Below, piece after piece: positions 5,541 to 61,711 of a DNA stretch of 64,000 bases (within the stretch, counting starts at the first letter, position 1; every line of letters begins with the position of its first letter). Source of the stretch: Ministeria vibrans ATCC 50519. Its lineage: Eukaryota; Protista; Filasterea. The stretch spans positions 3,004 to 67,003 of the forward strand of contig CALSCP010001478.1 in the NCBI GenBank assembly GCA_943704425.1, given 5' to 3'. The notes under the pieces are model-generated. The model ran no database searches, was not told the DNA's origin, and saw nothing but the letters and a program-made list of their open reading frames with translations. A program made the position numbers and the translations under genes.

Positions 5541-6404
5541 CTGTGTTTCTTTCTCCCTCCTTTCTCTTTCTCTTCTTGATTTTCGCAGTACCTTTGAGGT
5601 CTGTTCTGTGCGACGAGGCTGCCGACGATGTCATCAATTTGGGAGGCGCCGACATGCGCGAGCCTGCCTGAGGAGCCTTTGCGGCAGCTGTTGTTGATAT
5701 TGCAGTTGTGGTGGTAGCTGATGATGATGCTGCTGTCGTGTTCGCGGTGGCGGTGGAGGGAGGCGAATGGACAGGGCCACCCACAATGGCATTGTAATCA
5801 CGCTCAGCGCCTTCCCTGCACTGCGCCTGGTACTGTCGCAAACATTCGGAGAGCGCATCGATCCACCGGTCGCGCACCGCTTCGCTGTCCGCCAATATGT
5901 AGAAGGTTCGATTGGTGGTCATGACGGTGAACATGGTCCCCGTGCGCTTCGCCACGGCAAGGTCGCCCGGCGTTGAAATGCGCACGTCAACCACCTCACG
6001 CAAGTCCATATGGCCCTTCTCGCTCGTCTGCGGTGGCGGGGCAGTCGCGTAGTAGCGCAGGACCAGCCCGTCCAGGACAAACCAGCGCGACTTCCACGAC
6101 TTGACTCGCTTGCCTGCAAGCCCAAACGAGCGCAACGGGACAGAGAGAGAGTGAGTGAGAGAGAGAGGAGAGGCCAAAGTTCAAAAAAAAAAAATGCAGA
6201 GAATCGATAGCGAAAAACACAAAGGGTCGTTCTCCGCAAGACGGCGTGTGTCAAAGAAGGATGAGAGAACCAGCGAAGCGGGAGGGAGGGAGAGAGAGGG
6301 AGAGAGAGCGGGAGAATGAGGCAAAAGGGAAAGAGAAGAGCGAATGTGCATTGCGCTGTACCTCGCTTTGTGAGCCAGCCACTCATGACCGGCTGGTGAG
6401 ACAT
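3250..6404 (-). CDS. PH domain + two fascin/FGF-like beta-trefoil domains + fibrinogen-related-like C-terminal domain protein, 6 exons
   Basis: PH: MSGWLTKRGKRVKSWKSRWFVLDGLVLRYY...GHMDL...TFYILADSEAVRDRWIDAL. Trefoil repeats: VVRLRSKATGGYLGIDAAGEIDG and MLQLECQATGKYLAITSSGAVTGNG..SQFRL. C-domain: YWKLVRR..WHASRD..G..SYG..FS..FDELLFATGD..YGE..GANVFVR. Acidic tail. Confidence 0.75.
5311..5560. repeat. Intronic composite minisatellite: CTATCACTTTGTTTCT units within (CT)n
   Basis: Several tandem ~28-bp units tctctctatcactttgtttctttctcc followed by a (CT)n tract. Confidence 0.85.
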
Positions 6405-24589: not shown

Positions 24590-26164
24590 ATGTCTCGTCC
24601 ACATGTTCCTGGGTACACCCTGGGCAGAGCCCTGGGCAGCGGTGGCTTTGCTGTGGTCTACACAGCGACGGAAAATGTTACAAAGAAACGTTTTGCTGTC
24701 AAAGTAGGCATTACAAGTTGAATTTGCACTGTCTGTTGTTGCGACACGGGGTCTCCGAAGCCATGTGTTGCGTTCCTCAGGACACCCTGCACCATTTTTC
24801 TCGATTTTCAGTGTTTTCCGGGCGATTTTTTTTTTTTTTTTTTGCTCACTGTCTTGCTTTGTCTTGTAGGTGATCAACAAGCAAGGCGCGGCTGCGTCGG
24901 GCATGTCAGACCGTGTCAAACGCGAGTGTGCTCTCCATTCACAGCTGTCCCATGCGAACATCGTCGCTTGGAAGGAGTGCGTCGAGACGGAACGCGACAC
25001 TTGTATTGTCATGGAAGAGTGTCTTGGCGGAGACTTACAGGCGGCTCTGCAGCGGAAGGCGCCCCTGCCTCCGGCACGCAGCATTGTGCGCGACACTGCT
25101 ATGGCCATTGCGTATCTGCACGCGCGTGGCATTGTTCACCGCGATGTCAAGTTGAGCAATCTGCTGATCACCAAGTCGGGTCGGGTCAAACTGTGCGACT
25201 TTGGCCTGGCTGTGTGTCTACAAGCAGCACAGGGCGACTCGAGTGCCACCATCTGCGGCACGCCCAACTTCATTTCGCCAGAGGTCGTCGCGCGCCAGCC
25301 ACACGGTCGTGCCGTGGATCTCTGGTCGCTTGGTTGTGTGCTCTTCGCGCTGCTAACAGGCCAACCTCCTTTCGAGGGTGGCGACGTTTCAAGTACGCTG
25401 GAGCGAGTCTCCAAGGGCTCCTTTGCCTTTTCCACGTTGACTACGACGGATGCAGCCACGCCGGCCGCTCGTCAACTCGTCCAGCTGCTCCTCACAGCGA
25501 ACCCTGCGCATCGCCCCAACGCCACTCAAGTCCTCTCTCACCCATTCCTCCACGAAGATCCCACCGTCATCAAAGATAGCAACAGTAACCTCAGTGCCAA
25601 CGACAGTGGACTCGGCCACTCCACCCTCAGCACAGTATCATCAACAACAACACCAACACGGTCCTCGGCAGTCGACACTCTTCCCCTTCCGCCCCTCTCC
25701 ACCCTCCGCCTCCGTCCTGTCGTCCAGCGCACTCGCTCTGCGCGTATCCAGCTCGACTCTTCTGGCTTTGTCCGTCTCACTTTTGCCACAAAATCTAATC
25801 CGGATCGTCTTTCGGACGAAATCTTTTCTGTCTCTCCCAACGGCGAAACTGTTAGTCCTCCTTTTTTTGACAATAATTATTTCAGTTAGACTAATTGTTT
25901 GTTTTTTTGTTTTTTTTTTGTTTTTTAGGTGACACTCTCTCGAAAGGACAATGTCACAGAGTACCGCCTGAGTCAACTTCCATCCAAACTTTTTGCGAAA
26001 TATCGTTTTGCCGCACGGTTTGTGTCGCTCATTCAGTCACAAACACCAAAAGTAACACAAAAATTAAGGCTGGGCCATTGTTATGACAGAGCTTGATTAT
26101 ATTTATTATTATTATCATTGTTATTATTATTATTATTAGTAGTAGTAGTATTATTATTAGTATT

Positions 26165-26210
<46 letters not shown>

Positions 26211-27161
26211 TATTAGTATAAGTATTTTTATTATTATTGATGATGGACTCATTCACTTAAACAACAACAAAAACCATTGCAGGTGACGCTGTACGACGAA
26301 CGGAGCAAACTGTGTGTGATGGAGCGCCCAGGAGACATTGAATTGCGGGACTATGTGACAGGGGAGACAGTGCAACGTGCAGGAGAAAGCGGGCAAGTGA
26401 GTGTATGTGTTGGGGAGAGTCCGAAGGAGGAGGAGGAGGTGGTGGAAGGAAAGGGGACGACGGGTGGTGAAACGGCTGTGTTTGCGTTGGGTGCGATTGA
26501 GCATGCGAGTGCGATGCTGGAGTGGATTGCAACACAAGAGAAGACGAAGACGAAGAGGAGAAAGGACGAGAGAGTTCTTGAGTTGCTTGAACGGTTTGCT
26601 GTGCTGTGGAAACACGCGAGTGCAATTGCGAGTGCTCTCGAGGAGACAAACACCAGCGGCACTCTGGTCTTTCCCGTTGTGCTTGGCCGTCGTCCTTCTT
26701 GTGCTCCTTCACTCCACACACAGCTTTCAGCCCTCGTACCTTCTCAACAACAACAACAACAACAACCACAGCTGAGAGAGAGCTTTCTTCACACATCATC
26801 CGATCAGAGTACACTGAACGCGCCACAGTCACAGCATACACGGCACAGTGGCTCGTCGCTCGGCTCTCTCTCTCTTCTCTCCTTCTCCTCTTCCTCCCCC
26901 ACTAGCTCCCCTCGCATTGCGTTTCTTCCTCACGTCGGATGGTCCTTCCGTCGCAGCACTGGTGACCTGTGGGTTCTCTCTCTTGACGGCCATCGCCTCA
27001 CTCTCTCAAACGACCTCTCATCCCTCACTCTCTTTAACGTTGACTCTCCCTCTCTCCCACAACACTTTTCACTCGACAATATCTCTCTGTTGCCTTCCCA
27101 TCTCACTCAAATTCTTGCTCATTTGCCCACTTTTGCTGCCAAACTCAAGCAATCCCTGTAA
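24590..27161 (+). CDS. PLK4: Polo-like kinase 4 (SAK), 4 exons
   Basis: Kinase LGSGGFAVVY..HRDVKLSNLL..DFGLA..TICGTPNFISPE; DSGLGHST; cryptic polo boxes PPLSTLRLRP..QRT, KYRFAARFVSLIQSQTPKVTLY, FPVVLGRRP; PB3 FLPHVGWS..GDLWV..DG. Confidence 0.93.
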
Positions 27162-30447: not shown

Positions 30448-32286
30448 TTAGCAACGCTGTGATGGAGTGGACGAGAGAGCAGAGGTGGCGCTATTTTCTT
30501 CGAGGGGTGGTGGTCCTTCGTCGCCAATCAGCGGGTCTGCGTCTGCATCGATGAGAACGGGCGTGGAAGGAGCAAGAGGTGTACTGTTGCCGTCGACGTC
30601 GGAGGATGATGGAGGAGGAGGAGGAGGAGGAGGAGGGGCAGAGATGAATTCAAGGGGCGACGGAGTAACCAGATTAGAGTTGGCGTGCGTTGGCGGAGCA
30701 GGGTCAATGCTGATGGTGGGGACGTCGGATGCGTCATATTGACTATATGAAGGAATGTGTGTTGTGAGTGGGATTCATGTGTGAGTGTGTGTGCGAGTTA
30801 CTCCATGGATTGCTTGCGGGTGGAGACAACTTCAAAGGAAACGTTGGACACGCTGGAGACGCCGCTCTCGGGGCGGGGGGCAGAGCGGTCAAGCTGACGA
30901 GTTACGACAGTCGCGATCGGAGGGGGATGCGCCACAGTAGCCAAGGTGGTGGACTGCAATAAGGATGACAGTGCGTGAATAAGTAGAGTAAAGAGTCAGC
31001 GAGAGTATTGTTTGTGTGTCTGTGTGTGTATCACTCTTTCTCCCTCTCTGAGTAAGCTGAGTCTTACAGTTCTTCCGGGCGGAGCACTGTTGCGCTTGTC
31101 AAGCACTTTATGTACTTCCAGAGTGGACGAATCGTCACTCGGCGTTGGAGAGTTGGCCATCTGAGACAGACGGAGAGAGTCGCATTAAAAGTATAATTCA
31201 TACAGCTCAATAACAAATTCGAACCTTTTTTATCTTCAACAGTTCTTCTGCGCTTGAACCAGAAGAAGCAAACAGAAGCTGGACATTACTGAAAAAAAAA
31301 CATGCGAGTTAAAACACATAGGGAGAGACTCGACACGCAGATAGAGAAAAGAGAATACAGTGTCCAAGTGGTTTGTGTGCGCATACCGAACGGACGGCCC
31401 CGCTTCGTCCATGTCTGAGCGAGAACGTCTGCGCACGGGCGGGCCTGTCAAAGGAAACCGCGCAAGACTCTCCTTGGGACCCTGCTGGCCACCCTATTAA
31501 AAAAGACGTTATGAATTGACACGCATAAGACTCAATAAGGTTTGAGAAGTATCGCGATACGTTGAGCTGCTTATCAATGGCCATCTGGGTCTCCACAGGT
31601 AGGACACTTGGTGCAAAAGCAAGCTCCTGGGCATTGCGCAGGCTCTGGTCCAGCGAGGCACTCGCCGCATACGCTCGTAGTTCCTGTCGCACAATCGGCG
31701 CGTACCGCACTGTCAACTCGCAGTACCGCCGTCGCTGCTCCACGAGCAGCTCTTCAAGCGTCTCTCGTTGCTGTACCATCAGCTCCTGTGACTTTTCCGC
31801 CGCTTTCGCCATGGCTTTTTGCACTTTTGTGTCGACTTTGTTGCTGCGCGTCGTCTTATTGTGGCGTCGACTGTCAAGTGGGGCGCAAAAGTTCAGATTT
31901 TGATGTTTCTCGCTCTTTGGCGTCCACTTACAGAGTCTGTTTTCCGAGCGTACTCAGTTCGTTGCGCTGCTGTTTCGTCACCTTTTCGTATTTCTTGATC
32001 AGTTTGTCCGTCTGCTTTCGATTCTGCACATCCAGTTTCTACGATGCAATAGAACACAAAGAGTCATTTCCACCGCATCTCCGCCGCCTTCGTCCCTTCA
32101 GGCACATGTATACCTTGATTGGTTCTAAAAATGCCTGCAGATGGTCGCATACTTGGCTGTACTCTTGCTGGACAAGAACCTACCACAAGATGAAAAAAAC
32201 ATGCAGAAACGCACTAATAAGAGAAACGCTCGCTCTCTCTCTCTCTCTATTTCTTTGTATCTTTCTCCCTCCTTTCTCTTTCTCCC

Positions 32287-32370
<84 letters not shown>

Positions 32371-33103
32371 ACAGTACAAACCGCATCTCCTCCTACCTGG
32401 TGCGAAATCAGATTGCTCAGTGCTCCGCCGAGTGTGCTTGTTGCTCCAAGGGCACCAATGGCAGACTGCGCAAAGGCCAATAATTGACGAAAGAGGGTCG
32501 TGTCAACACAAACAACAACAACAGAAAGGAAAGAGGCGCAGGCGTAGGCCAAGGCGCACACACTCACCTCTGTACACACTTTCAGTGACTGCAGAAACAC
32601 CATCGCGGACGCACACGACGCCTTGACGTTTGCCTAAAAATCCAATTGTGGTAAATACTTAATCGTCATCTTGACAAGCGCAAAAAACATAAGTACAAAC
32701 CGCCACAAACACACACACACACACGCTCTCTCTCTCTCGCTCCCTCGGTAATAGCCATGTCACGCTACGCCAGACGCCGTCTCACCGCATGCTTCGTGGC
32801 CGCCTTCACCATCGCCTCCCACTCCAACACTCCTAAACGTGTCTTGTCGTTAGTTCAATCGTCCTATTTCTCGCAAGTCCTTTGCAACAAACACCATCGC
32901 CCCCGTCCCATCGGCCCACGTTCGCCCCTACCTCCTTTCATTCCCGCCAGAGTGTGCTTGCACAGCTCCTCAAGATCGTCGATTTCTACACAATGTAACA
33001 AGCGAAGAGTGACGTCACGATCGATCGGAACAAAAGCGCAGTCGTTACGGTCCATCTGAGCACTGAACTCATCTGGCATGATGTCTGCAAACTGGCTCGT
33101 CAT
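30448..33103 (-). CDS. I-BAR (IRSp53/MIM homology domain) protein with Pro-rich tail, many small exons
   Basis: Spliced protein: LCKHTLAGMKGGVLEWEAMVKAATK...FLQSL...LGGALSNL...DKLIKKYEK...LEELLVEQRRRYCELTVRYAPIVRQE...APSVLP. This parallels MIM (WEDFI.KA.K; ALIEERGRFC.F...RPV; P.KLP). Confidence 0.75.
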
Positions 33104-33252: not shown

Positions 33253-36200
33253 CTACAATTCGGAAGAGTTCTCAATGGCAAAGACGCGCGTCTCGCCGTC
33301 GGCAAAGATACAGGCAAGGCGAGTCTGTGAGGGGAACACCTGGAGGGTGCGACAGCGACGCTCGGTTGCGTACACGTCTAGCTGCACACCCGTCTGGTCG
33401 TCCCACACGCGTAGTGTGCCATCGCGACTGCCCGAGACCAGATTGACATTGCCCAGACCCGTAATGTAGTAGGCAATGGCGTCGACCGAGTCATGGTGGC
33501 CCGTAAGCAGGTGCACAATGACGCCTTGCTCGGCATTCCACACGACCACGTTGTGATCGCTGCCCGTACTCGCAATGCGCACCTGTGACGCACCCATATA
33601 CGTGCACAACGACATCACAAAGCTCAAGTGGCCCGTCAACGTATGGTAGCACTCGCCCGTCTGCTCCGACCACACGCGCACCGTGCGGTCGTCGCTGCCC
33701 GACACCAAGCGTACATCACCCTTGCTCGTCGTGTAGTGCGACACCGCATTGACCACGTCCGTGTGGCCATTCAGCACGCCAACAGGTGAGCCCGTTGTGA
33801 CGTTCCACGTCCGCACCGTGTGGTCCCAGCCGCCGCTAACAACGCGTCGCTCACCCGACGCCAAACGATACGCACTCACGCTGTTCACCCACTTGCTGTG
33901 GCCCTTGAGCTCGCACTCCACCTGTCCATTGTGCAGCTTCCAAATCTTGAGCGTCTTGTCCTGCAGCGCCATCACCACGCGCCACTGCAGCAGTCGGTTC
34001 TGGAACACGTCGAGGGCGCGCGCCCGACACTGGTCGCTGCCGTCGCCCCCTTCGTAGCGCCCAATCACCCGCGGCACGTCACCCACCGTCCGTACCACCA
34101 CATCCTTGTTGCCCTCCATCGACTGGTGCACCATCACATCCTCACCCTTCACCTCCATCACGACCAACGCACGCGCAGACTGCGCCACGTCGCCTCGCAA
34201 CGACGGTAGCGAAAAACCAGTCGTCGGATTGAACAGACGCAACAGTCGATCGCCGCACGCAACCACCACTCGTGGCTCGCCGTCCATCTCAAACGTCCGC
34301 ATCGCCTGCACCTGCGGCGTCGGCACCTCCCGCACCAGCGAACCCGTTGCCTCCGACATGGTGCGTACCACATCGTCTCCATTGGCACCCATCAGCAACA
34401 GACGCATTCCTCGCTCGTCGACACACGACGCCACGCACACCACGGGGCCCTTGCGTCCCGCCTGAAGCACCGTCTTCTCCGTGCCCTCTTTCACGTTCCA
34501 CACGCGCACTGTACGGTCCGCACTACCACTCGCCACGCACCAGGGTCCATCGGAACTCCCGTCCCTGTACGCACACAGTGTCCACACCATGTGCTGGTGG
34601 CCCTCGAGCACATGTAGTGCCGCGCCGCCACGAACGGTGTCCCACAGTCGCACCGTCCAGTCGAGACCCGCCGACGCAAGGATGGTCGGTACCGACGATG
34701 TTGCCGACGGACAGACACACACGGCGTACACCGTGCCTTCGTGTCCCTCGAGTGCGTGCACCAACGAACGACGACCCACATTCCACACGCGCACCACCGC
34801 ATCGCTGCAAGCCGTGCCCGCAAAGTCGCCGCCCACTTGCCACACGGCAATGCCGTGAACCTTTCCTTCGTGTCCCTCAAAGCGGTGCATCACCTCGTTC
34901 GTCTGCACACTCCACAGGTTGAGTTGGCGATCATCGCCGCCCGACAACACGCGCAATACTCCGTTCAACGTCACAGCAGCAATCGATAGCACTCGTCCAG
35001 AGTGACCTTGCAACGACGCCTCAATCTCGCCACTGTCAGCCGACCACACTTTGACGGTGCCGTCGGTCGAGCCACTGAACACACGCCAGTCTCCCGACTG
35101 CGTCTGCGCCACGTCAACCGCCAAAATGCCATTGGCGTGGCCCTGAAGAATGAGCACATCGGCGCCAATCTGCTCGGGTGCCTGCGGCTGACACGCTGTG
35201 ATGCTCAACTGACGATGACGCAGAATGTCGGCCGTGGCCACCACATGTTCCATAAGCGGCACCCACGCAAGATCTGCCGCGCGCCCACGCCCAGCATTGC
35301 CGCCGAGCGCCTCCAGTTCACCAGCGAGTCGTCGCCACAGTTGCTCACTGATCTGACGAGTGTCCATGTGAATGGCACTCGTCGAGCGCAGAATGGCGTG
35401 CTTGAGGACCGCTGCCGCCGCGCGCATGTCGCTGCGTTGCAACGGCTGAATCACCGCCTGCTTGTTCGTGCGCTTGAGAAACACCGAACCTTTGCGACGG
35501 AAGACGGGCGCGGGAGCCACGGCGGCGCCAGAGCCCGCCACCACATCACGGTCGCCCGGCACAAAGGCAAGCTCCGCAGTAAGAGCAACACCGGCAGCAC
35601 TCGCCGACGTAGAGGACACCTCACTAATGTTGCTGTCAAAACTGGCGCCACGACCGTAACCACGCTCATCGTCTTGCTGTGCTTGTTGCTCCTGTTCGTA
35701 GTAAAGTCGCTCCGCTTCGTCCTCCGCAATGTCATCGCCCCCCTTGTGCGACGAGCTCCATGGACGCGACACGTGCATAAGCGAGGGTGCTCGTTTGGCA
35801 AGCAGTGATAAACGCGACGTCACACGACCCGTCGCCACAAGCTTCTTGGCCGTTGCCAGCAAACCCTCGTCGTTGCCCGCCTCGTCGCCGCCGTCACCAC
35901 CGACCGCATCGGCATTCTCAACGGCCGCCTCGTCGGCCTTTTTTTGCTCGATGCGAAGACGCTCCTGCTTGCGCTCCTCATCCTCAAAGGGCGACACAAT
36001 CTGATCGGTGCGCATGGCCCAAGCCATGCCCATCGCGTGGCGTTTCCGTCGCATCTCCGTCTGACGTCGCTTCAGATCTCGAGTTCCCGCCGGTCCCGTG
36101 CTACTTCCCGACGAGGACGTCCGACTCACCGACTGGTGCCGCGAGGCGTACTCGTCGTCCGACTTGTCCGAGCCCGCAAAGCTTGGCTGGTGCGCGGGCG

Positions 36201-36310
36201 GAGTTCGCTCAGACGGATTGCTGCCGGGAGGCAACGAGGTAGGAGGAGCGGGTGGCAACGAGGCAGGCGGAGAGCTGCTGCCACCGACAGTCGAGGGGCG
36301 TTTCCGAAGA

Positions 36311-36341
<31 letters not shown>

Positions 36342-39300
36342 AAGCAGAGGCTGCAGGCGGTGGCTTAGACGGGGATCGACGAGGCTTGCTTGCGGACCGC
36401 GCTACCTTGATGTTGCTACCACCTCCTTTGCCACCGGTGAGAACGGCGGCTGCCGCAGCACCCGAAGCTGCTTCGGCGGACGCCTTGAGTGCCTCACGTT
36501 CCGACTCGGCCTTGCTGACGTCGTTTTGGTCGCTGTCGCCGATCTGAATCGCATTGAGAATGACATAGTCGCAGTCCTCGAGCGCGTCCTGCACACCCGT
36601 ATTCACGCGCTCCTGCAGCCACGACGCATCAAAGAGGGTTTTCTCGACAACATCGGCGCGTGCACCACGCACTGCATGACGCACCAAGTTGGCCAGGTAG
36701 TGCTGACGCGCGTTGGCGGTCAGGTGAGAAAGCACACCTGCATACGACGGACACAATTCGCTCTGCGACACACCCACAAACGCCTCGACAAGCTGCTGCT
36801 GCAGCGTAACTAGAGAGTCTTGCAGCGCGGCCAGGGCAGGGTCGGTCGCGGAGACGAGCGAGAGGCTGAGACGTCGACTGGAGCTCGCTGCCTTGGTACA
36901 CGAGTCGACGAGGAACTGCCGGATAGCCTCGTCCATGTAAAGGTAAACGGTACCCGCAGTACGACCGGTGAAGCAGCGACTACTGTGAACAAGTTGACGA
37001 CTGAGCAGCATGGCGCGCGCCGATTCGACGCCGTCGCTTGTCTCGTCATGCTTATGGATCCACAGCATGTCGACAACATCCGATGGCAGACGCTTCTCCT
37101 CTTCAAGCACCAACAGGTCACGGAAGAGACTGAGCACACGCCCTTGCAAGGACTCCTCCGATGCCTTGATCATGGCACGCGACACTTCCTCGGCGTATAC
37201 ACAACGGGCCTTGTCGTCGGCAAACGAGCGGGGGCGACGTGGCAACGCGTTGAGGAGGTACGTCGAGAGGCGGCTCTTGTCGGGGAGCATGGCACCGGCA
37301 ATGGCCACGAGTGCCCCGTGGCACTCGACGCGTCGTACCACCTCCAGAGCGTCCGCATCGGCGCCCGTTCGTACCTCTTCGCGCCATTCGGCCGGCTCGC
37401 ATGTCTCCGGCAGGTTTTTGGCAAAGATGGCGAGCGCTTGGGATTCGGCAAAGGCCGGCACACGGTGCTCGGCAAACTGCTTGTCGGTGGCACGGAACAC
37501 CGCATGGGCGACGGTGTCGCGCACCGTCACGAGCATCAGCGATTGGCTGCTCACAATGTCCATCGCCACGAGTACGTCGCGTTCCCAGACACCGTCAAGC
37601 ACAAGAAGACAGCGACGGTCCTCAAAGTGCAGTCGGAGCAGCTCGGCGCGGTCCTCAATGGTATCCGTGAGGAACGACACGCCCACAATGTCCGCAAGCT
37701 CCTGCTGCACCGAGTGTGCCGAGACCCCTTTGCCAACGTCAATCCAAATAACACCGTCAGGAAACACGTCGCGTATGCCTCGGTTGCGCACAGCGGCCAG
37801 AGTCAGCGTCGTCTTGCCCGAGCCAGCGGGGCCCACGACAGAGACGCCCGAGACGGCGAGTTTGCGCAGACGCACTGCCAGTCGCTGCACTTCCGTCTCA
37901 GCATCGGGATCATTGTAGGAAAACGAAAAGTCACTGGTGTACAGCGATTCAACCTTCGCATCACTCTTCGACTGGCCCTTCGCCTTGCTCTTCTTGGCAT
38001 TCTTCTTAGTCTCCTTCTTGGCATTCTTTGTCTTCTTCGTCTTTTTCTTGTCCATGACCTTGGTACTGCCCTGGTCTCCCTCCCCGTCTTTCTCATCCTC
38101 ATCCTCATCATCATCCTCCGCATCATCGTTGTCCTCCTCTTCCTCATCATTGACATTGCTGCTCTCATCAATGGCATTGAGACGCGACGCAAACGAGTCA
38201 GGCTTGAGCGATTTTGACATTTTGCGCCCCACAGCCATGCCACTGAGGCCAGTCTGGCGACCGCGCCGGGCCTGTGCAAAAAGTGCGATGGAGTTGTACA
38301 GCTGTGTGACGGCTTCATCGTGCGGAACGTACGCCAGAGGGAGACCGGGAATGATCCCGTACAGAGCAAAGGTCGACATGCCCTGCAGCGACTCGCGGCT
38401 CTGGATGCTGCCACGCCGTTCGCCAAGAGCCATTTCACGGATGCACGCCGCATGAGCCTCCTGGAGGTCCTGCTGAAGCACTCCCAGCTGTCTATCAAGC
38501 AATCCCACAATATGGCTGTAGAGTGACTCTTTGGCGAGCATGACACGAAGTGAGTGTCGACTGAGAGCCATGACACGCGCGGTGGTGCGTGCAATCTCGG
38601 GTGACAGGGTCTGCACCGCGAGGACCAAGTCGTTGACGGCGTCGCCTGCTTGCTCACGACACAGCGTCAGTGCGGCTTGGAGACCATTGCGTATGGCACG
38701 TACACGATCAATCTCAAAGGCAGCTGCCGTGTGAATGGTGCTGGGCACTTCACCCATCTTCTCGCACTCGGCCAGCACATCGAGCGTGAAGTCGACGAGA
38801 CGGACGCCCTGCAAGGTCAACTCAAGCGGGCTGTTGACATCCACAACCAGCTGACGCGCCTCGTTGGGAGAGTGTGTAGCACCAGCGGTAGTACTCGGAG
38901 CGGCTGGGGAGCTGGGATTGGAGGTGGGACTGCTGACAAGGTTGGTGGTGTTGGACGGGGGAGGCACAAGACCACCGGCGAAACTGTTCAAGGACGAGGG
39001 TGTTATGTTGGATTCAAACGGCGCCAGACGACGGCTGCCAAGAGGTGAGAGGACGTTGAACGACGACGATGGCAACGTGAGAGTTTTGGACTGTTTGTTG
39101 GCGCCGGGAGCGACGGTCATGGACCCTGGTGTGCCCATGGTGGTAGTTTGGCTGCCGAGGGCGGCGTTGTCTGCGTCGACGTACACGTTGGGCACCAAGG
39201 AGCACTTTTGGCGCAAGAAATACACCCATCGGTCGCGTGTCCACACAACGCGATTGCCTGCCAGCACGTCGTTGGCGACGAGAGGCGCACGGCCCTTTTT

Positions 39301-40240
39301 CAGCTTGGATTTCGGCACCTTGATCTGCAGCGTGGCCGGAGACCCTTCGTCGTCGTCGTCGTCGTCGTCGTCGTAGTCGTCGAGGTTTGCCGACGCATCC
39401 CGTTCGGCGCTGTTGCTACCGCCCGTCTCGCTTTCCGGCACAATACGAAAGGCCATCTGGTCGCGCTTGCCCTGCTGCGACACCCGAAACATGTTCTGCC
39501 CTGTCGGCGTAATGCTGACGTCGTCGGCCAGACGAATGCCCTCAAAGTGGCCGGCCTCGTCGATCTCGGTGATGCTGCGGGGCGAGACGGTACACCAGCC
39601 CGACAGGCGATCGAGAACTGAGGTGGCGGGTGCGTCAGGAACGGCATCGGACGCTTGCGACCCTTCCGCCTGCACAGCACCGCCCTCCGCCTCGACAGAC
39701 TCGGCGGACTCCAGACTGGACGAGACGGGCGGTCGCTGCGACATGCTACTGGGCAGCGTGGACAGGGTCGTGCTGAGAGCGACAGCGTCGCCGCCTGTGC
39801 TTTCACGCCGGTTCATTCGTGCGCCCTCTTCGTCAACCCTGCGCCATTGGAGGAGCGTTCAAGAGATACAAGCGGTGAGAAGGGATCAACGAAGCACAGC
39901 CAAGACGTGCTGGCGCGAGGCAAGGACACAGCGAAGCGGCAAAGGAGCCGGAAAGAGGGAAGTGGAAACAATTTTTCTTTCCGAGAAAAAAGATTGATTT
40001 CTCGTCAAAAAAAAGTCGGTCTACAATGAAATAGGAGACGCGAGCAACACACAGCGGCACGTACCAGACCCAGGTGAGATGGGTGTTGTCAAGGAAGAGC
40101 TTGGCAAGGCACCATTTGCCCTTTTTCAAACCCATCATTTTGCGTTTGGTTTCGCGGCGAATGAAGACGCGCCCATGGATCGGCACAATGTAGTCCACAT
40201 ACGTGGACACGGAGTGCGCCGGGTCGAGAGTGTGGACCAT
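33253..40240 (-). CDS. STAND NTPase, Apaf-1/NLR-like: PH - helical bundle - NB-ARC - helical domain - ~14 WD40 repeats; 2 exons (40240-40065, 39838-33253), ~2253 aa
   Basis: Walker A GPAGSGKTT (37807-37833), VFPDGVIWIDVGK, Walker B LLVLDGVWE (37582-37608), sensor LVTVRD, winged helix LPSDVVDMLW..LLSRQLV, YLANLVRH..LFDASWLQERV, and repeated GH...SG..D.T.RVW WD40 units. A phase-2 GT-AG intron joins the upstream exon in frame. Confidence 0.88.
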
Positions 40241-57091: not shown

Positions 57092-58093
57092 ATGTTACCT
57101 CCGCGCCCCAACAGGAGAAGTAACCACTACAAGTTCCTGCGGAGGCTATGTGCCTTCCGCCAGATGGATTTCCAGCTTGCCTTCTGGCAGCAAATCCTTC
57201 TTCTTGTCTCACCCGCCCGCGCGTAAGCTGCGTCTTTCTCCACTGCCACTTGCCGCCCACCCTCATTCGCCGCTCTTCTACTCCCCCCTGCAGATACAAA
57301 AACATTTTCTATCATAAGCGTAAGAGCGACAAAACGGACAGGACTCAAGTTTGAAATTTGTCTTGTCTCCTCATTCTCTCGATTTGTAGGCACCAAGAAC
57401 CAATGGGCCCGTGACGATCCGGCCTTTCTTGTTCTTCTTGCCGCCTGGTTGTGCGGTGAGGGCAAACGAGCGACGAGAAAGACAGAGAGAGAGAGACAAA
57501 GAGAGAGAACGAATGACTGAAACACACTCTCACTCTCTTAGCGAGTGCCATTGGATTCTCAGTGTACTTTCAGACGGGAGTCGTCCAGTGCATCAAGCTG
57601 CTGTTATGGCTCGTCTTTGTTGACTGTGTCTGTCTCGGTTTAGTCATCGCAACTCTTCTTTGGTACCAAAAAATGAATCATCAATTGACACGACACATTT
57701 TTAATCTTTCGTGTCTCATCTCTTACATTCTCACACACACACACACACTATTTCTCTCTTTTTCTCACTCTTTTCCTTGTTAGGTTTGTGTTTAACCGTA
57801 ACTGTCGGTCACGCCAGTCAGTCCACGCAGTCGACGAAGAACTCGAATGGAGCTACGCATTCGATGTCCATTGCAACGCTTTTTTCCCTCTTCTCATCGG
57901 TACTCCACAAAGTGCACAAAGGAAACTCCCACTCAAATGCCACCTTTTTCTTTTTTAGTTTTACATATCATCCAGTTGTTTCTTGCGCCGATCATCATTG
58001 GAGAGTTTACATTTGCATCGTTCTTTGTGGGGAATTCGCTGTGGCTCATCGCGCTCTCTTACTACGTCTACATTACATTCCTCGGTTATTCCG
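57092..58093 (+). CDS. UNC50: UNC-50/GMH1 Golgi membrane protein; 3' end lost in N gap
   Basis: KFLRRL..FRQMDFQLAFWQ..LLVSP, YKN.FYHK.TKNQWARDDPAFLVL, ELEWSYAFDVHCNAFFP, GNSLWLIALSYYVYITFLGYS. Confidence 0.93.
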
Positions 58094-58234
58094 GTACACT
58101 CAGCACACACGATGCCTCTCTATCTCTTTGTTTCGTTTTCCCTTCTCTTTTCTCTCCCTCTCTCTCTCTCTCTATCACTCTCTATCACTTTGTTTCTCTC
58201 TCTCTCTCTCTCTATCACTTTGTTTCTTTCTCCC

Positions 58235-58269
<35 letters not shown>

Positions 58270-59113
58270 NNNNNNNNNNNNNNNNNNNNNNNNNNNNNNN
58301 NNNNNNNNNNNNNNNNNNNNNNNNNNNNNNNNNNNNNNNNNNNNNNNNNNNNNNNNNNNNNNNNNNNNNNNNNNNNNNNNNNNNNNNNNNNNNNNNNNNN
58401 NNNNNNNNNNNNNNNNNNNNNNNNNNNNNNNNNNNNNNNNNNNNNNNNNNNNNNNNNNNNNNNNNNNNNNNNNNNNNNNNNNNNNNNNNNNNNNNNNNNN
58501 NNNNNNNNNNNNNNNNNNNNNNNNNNNNNNNNNNNNNNNNNNNNNNNNNNNNNNNNNNNNNNNNNNNNNNNNNNNNNNNNNNNNNNNNNNNNNNNNNNNN
58601 NNNNNNNNNNNNNNNNNNNNNNNNNNNNNNNNNNNNNNNNNNNNNNNNNNNNNNNNNNNNNNNNNNNNNNNNNNNNNNNNNNNNNNNNNNNNNNNNNNNN
58701 NNNNNNNNNNNNNNNNNNNNNNNNNNNNNNNNNNNNNNNNNNNNNNNNNNNNNNNNNNNNNNNNNNNNNNNNNNNNNNNNNNNNNNNNNNNNNNNNNNNN
58801 NNNNNNNNNNNNNNNNNNNNNNNNNNNNNNNNNNNNNNNNNNNNNNNNNNNNNNNNNNNNNNNNNNNNNNNNNNNNNNNNNNNNNNNNNNNNNNNNNNNN
58901 NNNNNNNNNNNNNNNNNNNNNNNNNNNNNNNNNNNNNNNNNNNNNNNNNNNNNNNNNNNNNNNNNNNNNNNNNNNNNNNNNNNNNNNNNNNNNNNNNNNN
59001 NNNNNNNNNNNNNNNNNNNNNNNNNNNNNNNNNNNNNNNNNNNNNNNNNNNNNNNNNNNNNNNNNNNNNNNNNNNNNNNNNNNNNNNNNNNNNNNNNNNN
59101 NNNNNNNNNNNNN
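58270..59113. other. Assembly gap (N run) hiding the 3' ends of the convergent UNC50 and V-ATPase B genes; other large gaps at 7475-7644 and 61945-62181
   Basis: N runs flanked by microsatellites or homopolymers. Confidence 0.98.

Positions 59114-61711
<2,598 letters not shown>

Follow-up and report, generated by a model that had tools for sequence, protein, structure and literature searches.

We report that a 64,000-nucleotide stretch of Ministeria vibrans ATCC 50519 DNA (assembly GCA_943704425.1, contig CALSCP010001478.1, positions 3,004 to 67,003; this whole stretch is called the window, and coordinates are counted from its first letter) carries on its minus strand, between 40240 and 33253, a gene that is real, transcribed and spliced. 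The reading that we favour, and hold to be probable, is that this focal gene expresses, from two exons, an Apaf-1-type STAND protein with an orphan effector slot, in which C-terminal WD40 propellers would control a nucleotide-binding oligomerisation domain (NOD) that clusters N-terminal modules. Apaf-1-like NB-ARC-WD40 proteins are at the core of animal apoptosis, and their pre-animal history is poorly charted. A CARD-less protein with NB-ARC and WD40 regions in Apaf-1 order is a known kind; what appears to be new here, and what we consider the most interesting features of the protein, are its orphan head and its degenerate switch motifs.

The exons were read from the sequence and their joint was seen in transcript contigs, as follows:

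40240-40065, minus strand: exon 1, with its ATG at 40240; 176 nt, that is 58 codons and 2 nt
40064-39839, minus strand: spliceosomal intron, 226 nt, GT..AG, phase 2; on the plus strand its ends read CT..AC
39838-33253, minus strand: exon 2, 6.6 kb, with no further introns seen; stop codon at 33253-33255

The donor GT lies at 40064-40063 and the acceptor AG at 39840-39839, the frame being restored via a split codon (TG, then G), and the spliced product has 2,253 residues, in agreement with the protein of about 2250 residues that an earlier note on this DNA had claimed. Within exon 2, the open reading frame (ORF) from 39816 to 33253 runs uninterrupted for 2187 aa. Four runs, drawn from three studies and including one polyA RNA-seq library, have contigs with a 226-nt skip that joins 40065 to 39838 (with the cut shifted by 1). 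Elsewhere the transcript contigs follow the DNA without a break, across both of the low-complexity inserts described below as well: insert 1 is spanned in polyA RNA contigs, and insert 2 is spanned only in runs guessed to be RNA. Transcription was seen in cultures and in environmental polyA RNA, in each case with no known challenge. Across runs filed under two organism labels (A and B) there were only two differences, a synonymous one at D1362 (window position 35731) and the non-synonymous S1141P (window position 36396), the latter within insert 2. The RNA contigs seen extend 5′ only to 40235. Two features were noted upstream of the start codon: at 40308-40301 a TATAAATA box, and at 40273-40262 a short upstream ORF of three codons (ATG AAA AAA TAA).

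The part of the protein on which its classification depends consists of the NOD, with its nucleotide-binding domain (NBD), first helical domain (HD1), winged-helix domain (WHD) and second helical domain (HD2), and of the WD40 region:

38320-38358, minus strand: pre-P-loop motif GIIPGLPLAYVPH, ORF residues 487-499; likely start of the NOD
36556-37851, minus strand: NBD-HD1-WHD and first half of HD2, ORF residues 656-1087, placed by Pfam, the PDB match, hhalign and motifs
37810-37833, minus strand: Walker A, GPAGSGKT, ORF residues 662-669
37585-37608, minus strand: Walker B, LLVLDGVW, ORF residues 737-744; second Asp replaced by Gly
37516-37533, minus strand: sensor-1, LVTVRD, ORF residues 762-767; its Arg is R766
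37303-37323, minus strand: GLPL-equivalent, with Pro replaced by Gly
36928-36936, minus strand: MHD-equivalent, reading MDE
35170-35481, minus strand: probable second half of HD2 and linker to the propellers, placed by resemblance to the family consensus
33256-35169, minus strand: WD40 region of about 14 blades, placed by Pfam WD40 and motif count

By profile and structure-database searches, the centre of the protein is a bona fide NB-ARC in Apaf-1 order, followed by WD40. The Pfam NB-ARC model (PF00931) matches ORF residues 640-800 at E 2e-16 with 60.3-62.8 bits, against a cut-off of 23.5, and in a six-frame search of the genome the focal locus scores 65.2 bits. The best solved match in a PDB sequence search was human Apaf-1 (E 4e-12, 49 bits, over NBD-HD1-WHD), with plant RPW8-type helper NLRs ranking after it. 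When 1.84 billion representative proteins were searched exhaustively with HMMER, 2,936 relatives were found at E <= 0.001; the closest match the NOD with 72-86 bits and ~30-33% identity, and none exceeds 86 bits or 33%. Among the 44 best, NB-ARC is present in all 44, APAF1_C in 35 and WD40 in 34, and hhalign against a profile of these 44 proteins gave a probability of 99.9% (E 5e-34); the 366 aligned columns begin at the P-loop and end within HD2, after its first half. HD2 itself was aligned by profile-profile comparison only, to this family with APAF1_C in 35 of its 44 members; the Pfam APAF1_C model does not score directly on the focal protein. The C-terminal 640 residues match Pfam WD40 at E 1e-51, several propeller models match as well, and a motif count gives 14 blade endings (five canonical, three degenerate, then six), which we read as two propellers. 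In Pfam, NACHT reached only E 1.1, over the P-loop alone, and LRR gave no match. No DNA-level tandem repeats were found across the WD40 region, and repeat homogenisation of the HET-E/NWD type was rejected on this ground.

These results agree with what the earlier note had read from the letters. The NB-ARC motifs that it listed in Apaf-1 order (GIIPGLPLAYVPH, GPAGSGKT, FPDGVIWIDVG, LLVLDGVW and LVTVRD) are all present; the profile check that it asked for returned a clear NB-ARC, by the Pfam and hhalign scores given above; and its count of about 14 WD40 repeats forming two propellers is upheld by the WD40 match and the blade motifs. The motif GIIPGLPLAYVPH is likely, by comparison with the family consensus, the equivalent of the conserved VPxLPP segment that precedes the P-loop in the relatives.

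Some 480 residues precede the NOD, in the slot where the relatives carry their effector, and in the searches made here this N-terminal region is an orphan. Its parts are:

39196-39837, minus strand: exon-2 part of a candidate PH-like region, Ser/Ala-rich and with poly-Asp inserts; recognised by sequence pattern only
39205-39237, minus strand: helix RDRWVYFLRQK, at the end of the candidate PH-like region
38416-38829, minus strand: helical module of four predicted amphipathic helices, ORF residues 330-353, 360-402, 406-426 and 431-467

The helical module covers ~140 aa directly before the NOD and begins at ORF residue 330, about residue 396 of the spliced protein, so that ~385 residues precede it. 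AlphaFold2, run without an alignment, predicted the helices consistently, at low confidence (pLDDT 37 for a 537-aa model and 49 for a 212-aa model); their hydrophobic moments are 0.42-0.58, and no segment of membrane-spanning hydrophobicity was found in the helical region. At 21-43 residues, the helices predicted in this low-confidence model differ from those of the six-helix death fold. Foldseek with the pLDDT-49 model found nothing at E <= 0.001, and above E 0.01 only generic long-helix matches (Vipp1/PspA, chemoreceptors), to which we assign no weight. In Pfam, none of the CARD, TIR, HET, death-fold, HeLo, SesA, MLKL, RPW8 or PH models scores on the N-terminus even at E 10; Pfam and NCBIfam returned only low-complexity noise there, and none of the three pieces (exon 1, PH-like part, helical part) had a meaningful match when searched by sequence against PDB. 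For the helical part alone, the nearest clusters in the protein-language-model Atlas are fungal STAND N-termini of SesA type, at 0.87 and 0.82, with an MLKL-N/NB-ARC cluster at 0.76; Atlas scores below 0.9 are leads only, and the shared-feature count of 131 is in the range of chance matches or distant relatives.

The PH reading came from the sequence pattern: a basic exon 1 (net charge +6), taken in the earlier note as the first strands of a PH-like domain, then alternating strands and a Trp-bearing helix. A PH domain as such gained no support from our searches, in which Pfam, PDB and Atlas gave no match for either exon's part, searched apart, and exon 1 had no usable match in Atlas, whereas at least 46 canonical PH domains elsewhere in the same genome do score in a genome-wide PH search. 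The proposed sequence of a PH domain and a helical bundle therefore stands in part: the region before the NOD is predicted to be helical and amphipathic, whereas the PH domain has no tool behind it and the bundle fold no confident model. The absence of CARD, TIR and HET, by contrast, and the impression of an unrecognised N-terminal architecture were both well founded. The N-terminus finds only itself in its own genome; we found no relatives of it in a word-indexed database, among proteins of 1,203-3,827 aa (shorter, domain-only proteins being outside that search), none in JGI metagenomes with six peptide patterns, and none by phmmer against 153 retrieved relatives and 20 paralogue loci.

The second feature that sets the focal protein apart is the state of its nucleotide switch, which we judged against the 80 closest NODs. 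The Walker A motif and the sensor-1 Arg, both conserved in 79 of these 80, are kept. Walker B (LLVLDG) retains its first Asp but has Gly in place of the second, a position that is Asp in 75, Asn in 4 and Gly in 1 of the relatives; the GLPL Pro (75/80) is Gly; and the MHD His (77/80) is Asp, giving MDE where the relatives have LHD, in a register with which hhalign agrees. With these three replacements, and with the Walker A Lys and sensor-1 Arg retained, nucleotide binding with little hydrolysis and a weakened ADP lock would be expected, given the known roles of the second acidic residue of Walker B and of the MHD histidine in NB-ARC proteins. The NOD is further interrupted by two inserts, on both of which Pfam and NCBIfam returned only low-complexity noise:

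37915-38220, minus strand: insert 1, ~100 aa, acidic and then lysine-rich low complexity, between the pre-P-loop motif and the P-loop
35482-36555, minus strand: insert 2, ~360 aa, Ala/Ser/Pro/Gly-rich and probably disordered, splitting HD2

In a quick maximum-likelihood tree, which included the genome's own NB-ARC genes and external relatives and no animal sequences, the focal gene falls in an Apaf-1-like group, within a polytomy with other NB-ARC-WD40 genes of its own genome, and its branch, at 3.54 changes per site, is far longer than the median branch (0.36). This very long branch, together with the degenerate nucleotide-state motifs, makes a canonical ADP/ATP switch uncertain.

The focal protein, by these comparisons, is a highly divergent singleton in a genome rich in such genes. 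A six-frame profile search found at least 29 NB-ARC loci in the 29.7-Mb assembly, 20 of which were taken into the paralogue comparisons, and the focal NOD matches none of its paralogues with more than 33 bits. Among these 20 are a caspase-NB-ARC-WD40 gene, an NB-ARC-WD40 gene with an Apaf-1-like winged helix and several NB-ARC-TPR genes. Peptidase_C14 (caspase-like) domains lie in the same frames as NB-ARC at three loci (L014, L018 and L031, on contigs C138, C1613 and C328), and two of the three continue into WD40, a single-chain ‘apoptosome’ layout. Twelve of the 20 sampled genes (L021-L025 and L027-L033) form a separate clade with very short branches in the quick tree, including a near-identical pair, L022 and L025, on one contig (C2085); TPR repeats were found in the four scanned members of this clade in which repeats were detected. 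The clade looks like a recent lineage-specific expansion. Also among the 20 is a locus with DUF4559 fused N-terminally to NB-ARC (L015:1919-6334, contig C1907).

We propose, by extension from how Apaf-1 and other STAND ATPases are known to be autoinhibited and to oligomerise, that binding of a ligand or stress signal would release the NOD from a closed state imposed by the WD40 propellers; that the released NOD would oligomerise and cluster the N-terminal modules; and that these modules, once clustered, would act by induced proximity. Nucleotide would be bound and little hydrolysed, the ADP-locked state being weakened, in which case the propellers and the two disordered inserts would exert most of the control. 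The putative output may be membrane recruitment, cell death or another response, and an immune or cell-death role for the focal protein is suggested by analogy only. Several points weigh against this proposal. The NOD may have ceased to function as a switch, given the loss of three of its near-invariant residues and a branch about 10 times the median length; the searches yielded no orthologue against which purifying selection on the N-terminus could be measured; both structure models are of low confidence; and, with neither HET-E/NWD-type homogenisation nor more than slight differences between isolates, the sequence gives no sign either way of arms-race evolution.

The alternatives differ in what they make of the N-terminus and of the lost residues. 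We consider it distinctly unlikely that the protein is a membrane-tethered sensor and executioner, as the earlier note inferred, with its Apaf-1-type switch wired to an undescribed membrane-directed effector, in which a split PH-like region would serve as a phosphoinositide anchor and an internal four-helix module distantly related to SesA, HeLo or MLKL, in place of a caspase-recruiting CARD, would perforate or remodel the membrane upon oligomerisation, as HeLo, MLKL, RPW8 and CC domains do. The basic exon 1, the PH-like pattern of strands and Trp-helix, the four amphipathic helices immediately preceding the NOD and the Atlas proximity of these helices to fungal SesA and MLKL-N/NB-ARC clusters all point in this direction, and the SesA, HeLo-like, Goodbye-like and MLKL-like N-terminal domains reportedly have a common four-helix core (PMC9815663). 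However, the Atlas leads lie below 0.9, in the range of chance or distant relationship; the PH, HeLo, SesA, MLKL and RPW8 models stay silent; PDB searches gave no sequence match and Foldseek only generic long helices from a low-confidence model; and no segment has membrane-spanning hydrophobicity. Moreover, in known pore formers the active element is the first helix, at the N-terminus (PMC9815663), whereas the module here is internal, starting at about residue 396, and has no free first helix at the extreme N-terminus. There is a small but real chance, in our estimation, that the protein is instead a non-immune, constitutive scaffold or regulatory STAND protein, whose degenerate ATPase would be above all a platform for assembly in ordinary cell signalling. 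Vertebrate NPHP3-type STAND proteins would be precedents for such a scaffold. In favour of this are that the focal gene, in contrast to the NB-ARC-TPR clade with its recent expansion, is single copy and has no close paralogue; that it lies among housekeeping genes and is expressed, with no known challenge, both in cultures and in polyA RNA from the environment; that its product has lost catalytic and regulatory residues; and that long charged and disordered inserts such as those found here are typical of regulated scaffolds. Against this, no conserved orthologue was found, which would be unusual for a housekeeping component, in searches that apparently covered no records of this genome or its near relatives, and the nearest relatives carry death-type or defence-type effectors.

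It seems to us very improbable that the gene is a decaying or neofunctionalised remnant of a horizontally acquired bacterial-type NB-ARC-WD40 gene, now drifting. The single-sequence scores would fit such an origin, with prokaryote-like proteins at 72-86 bits (those that are named being cyanobacterial or from Anaerolineae) against 49 for Apaf-1 and at most 33 for the paralogues, as would the very long branch and the motif losses; the contrast in scores, however, is inflated by setting the best of 1.8 billion proteins against a single Apaf-1. Against decay, the frame remains open over 6.6 kb, and transcripts of the gene are both made and spliced. In the quick tree the external clade excludes the focal gene with a support of 87, leaving it in the polytomy with the NB-ARC-WD40 genes of its own genome, and recent transfer is thus not supported. 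The NOD-centred proposal set out above, of an Apaf-1-type protein clustering its orphan N-terminal modules under WD40 control, remains the one that we favour.

The neighbours of the gene are eukaryotic. The larger neighbouring ORFs with a match encode DHX16, Plk4 and an SH3-RhoGEF protein. Along its full length DHX16 is as close to animal as to green-algal and chytrid proteins, with identities of 54-66%. Nothing on the contig matched a caspase, as expected from the earlier observation that no caspase gene is adjacent. The Plk4-type kinase gene (window 24870-27158) has kinase, PB1 and PB2 domains and is split over at least two frames. Also in the window are a canonical PH domain at 5839-6111 on the minus strand (48.7 bits), unrelated to the focal gene; a plus-strand ORF of 291 codons with no Pfam match, just downstream of the focal gene at 31608-32483; and a drop in G+C to 0.28 at 58001-60000, the remainder of the window lying between 0.42 and 0.63. 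A genome search found Runt and integrin-beta genes and no light-harvesting complex (LHC) genes, the latter making an algal host unlikely, and the stretch recurs in seawater and algal-culture metagenomes; this suggests a marine heterotroph with holozoan-like gene content. The host had been described from the letters as a unicellular relative of animals, and the Runt and integrin-beta genes, the neighbouring Plk4 and the lack of LHC genes in that search, with an apparently heterotrophic lifestyle, are in keeping with this.

What the gene may mean depends on which of these explanations is right. The NB-ARC genes of this genome, whose gene content looks holozoan, have diversified into caspase fusions, expanded TPR forms and an orphan-headed singleton. 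If the N-terminal module is an effector, it would represent a new STAND output close to the origin of animals; were it also membrane-directed, then membrane-attacking STAND execution of the fungal or plant type would have been present in the animal stem lineage as well. A scaffold role with a crippled ATPase, on the other hand, would make the protein a natural example of a STAND protein that has moved out of the nucleotide-switch regime.

Among known systems, the focal protein compares in overall layout with Apaf-1, the animal apoptosome scaffold (PDB 1z6t, 3jbt, 5juy), in which NBD-HD1-WHD-HD2 is likewise followed by two WD40 propellers. The focal FPDGVIWIDVGK aligns to FPGGVHWVSVGK of Apaf-1, and the closest family of the focal protein carries the APAF1_C helical domain. 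In contrast to Apaf-1, the focal protein has no CARD (no CARD or death-fold match at E <= 10) and places ~385 orphan residues before its helical module; it has replacements at three switch positions (second Asp of Walker B, Pro of GLPL, His of MHD); and it contains disordered inserts of ~100 and ~360 aa and about 14 blades where Apaf-1 has 15. At only 49 bits, and with a tree that holds no animal sequences, there is no evidence of orthology between the two.

A second comparison is with classical and fungal NLRs. Bona fide NLRs combine NACHT with LRR; the focal protein has no LRR, and its NACHT match reaches only E 1.1, confined to the P-loop. In fungi, NLR-like proteins headed by SesA, HeLo-like, Goodbye or MLKL-like domains, including those of NWD2/HET-S type, place a helical module of similar size directly before a STAND NTPase and WD40 or TPR repeats (PMC9815663). 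Their resemblance to the focal helical part is a weak one in the language model, with no profile match, and the focal protein differs in that its module is not N-terminal and its WD40 repeats are not homogenised.

The NOD itself is most similar to those of prokaryotic NB-ARC-APAF1_C-WD40 proteins from cyanobacteria, Chloroflexi and metagenomes (72-86 bits; the named members of this closest external family are cyanobacterial or from Anaerolineae), which share the same C-terminal WD40 sensor. Their N-termini, with a median of ~190 residues, carry Trypsin_2, CHAT or DUF4062 where the focal protein has its orphan region; they keep the canonical DD, GLPL and LHD motifs that the focal NOD does not; and the focal gene, in contrast to theirs, has an intron and eukaryotic neighbours. 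The caspase-NB-ARC-WD40 paralogues L014 and L018 differ from the focal protein in having Peptidase_C14 in the N-terminal slot, and their NODs resemble the focal one with only ~16-23 bits, yet they belong to the same genome, fall in the same Apaf-1-like group of the tree and end, as it does, in WD40 repeats.

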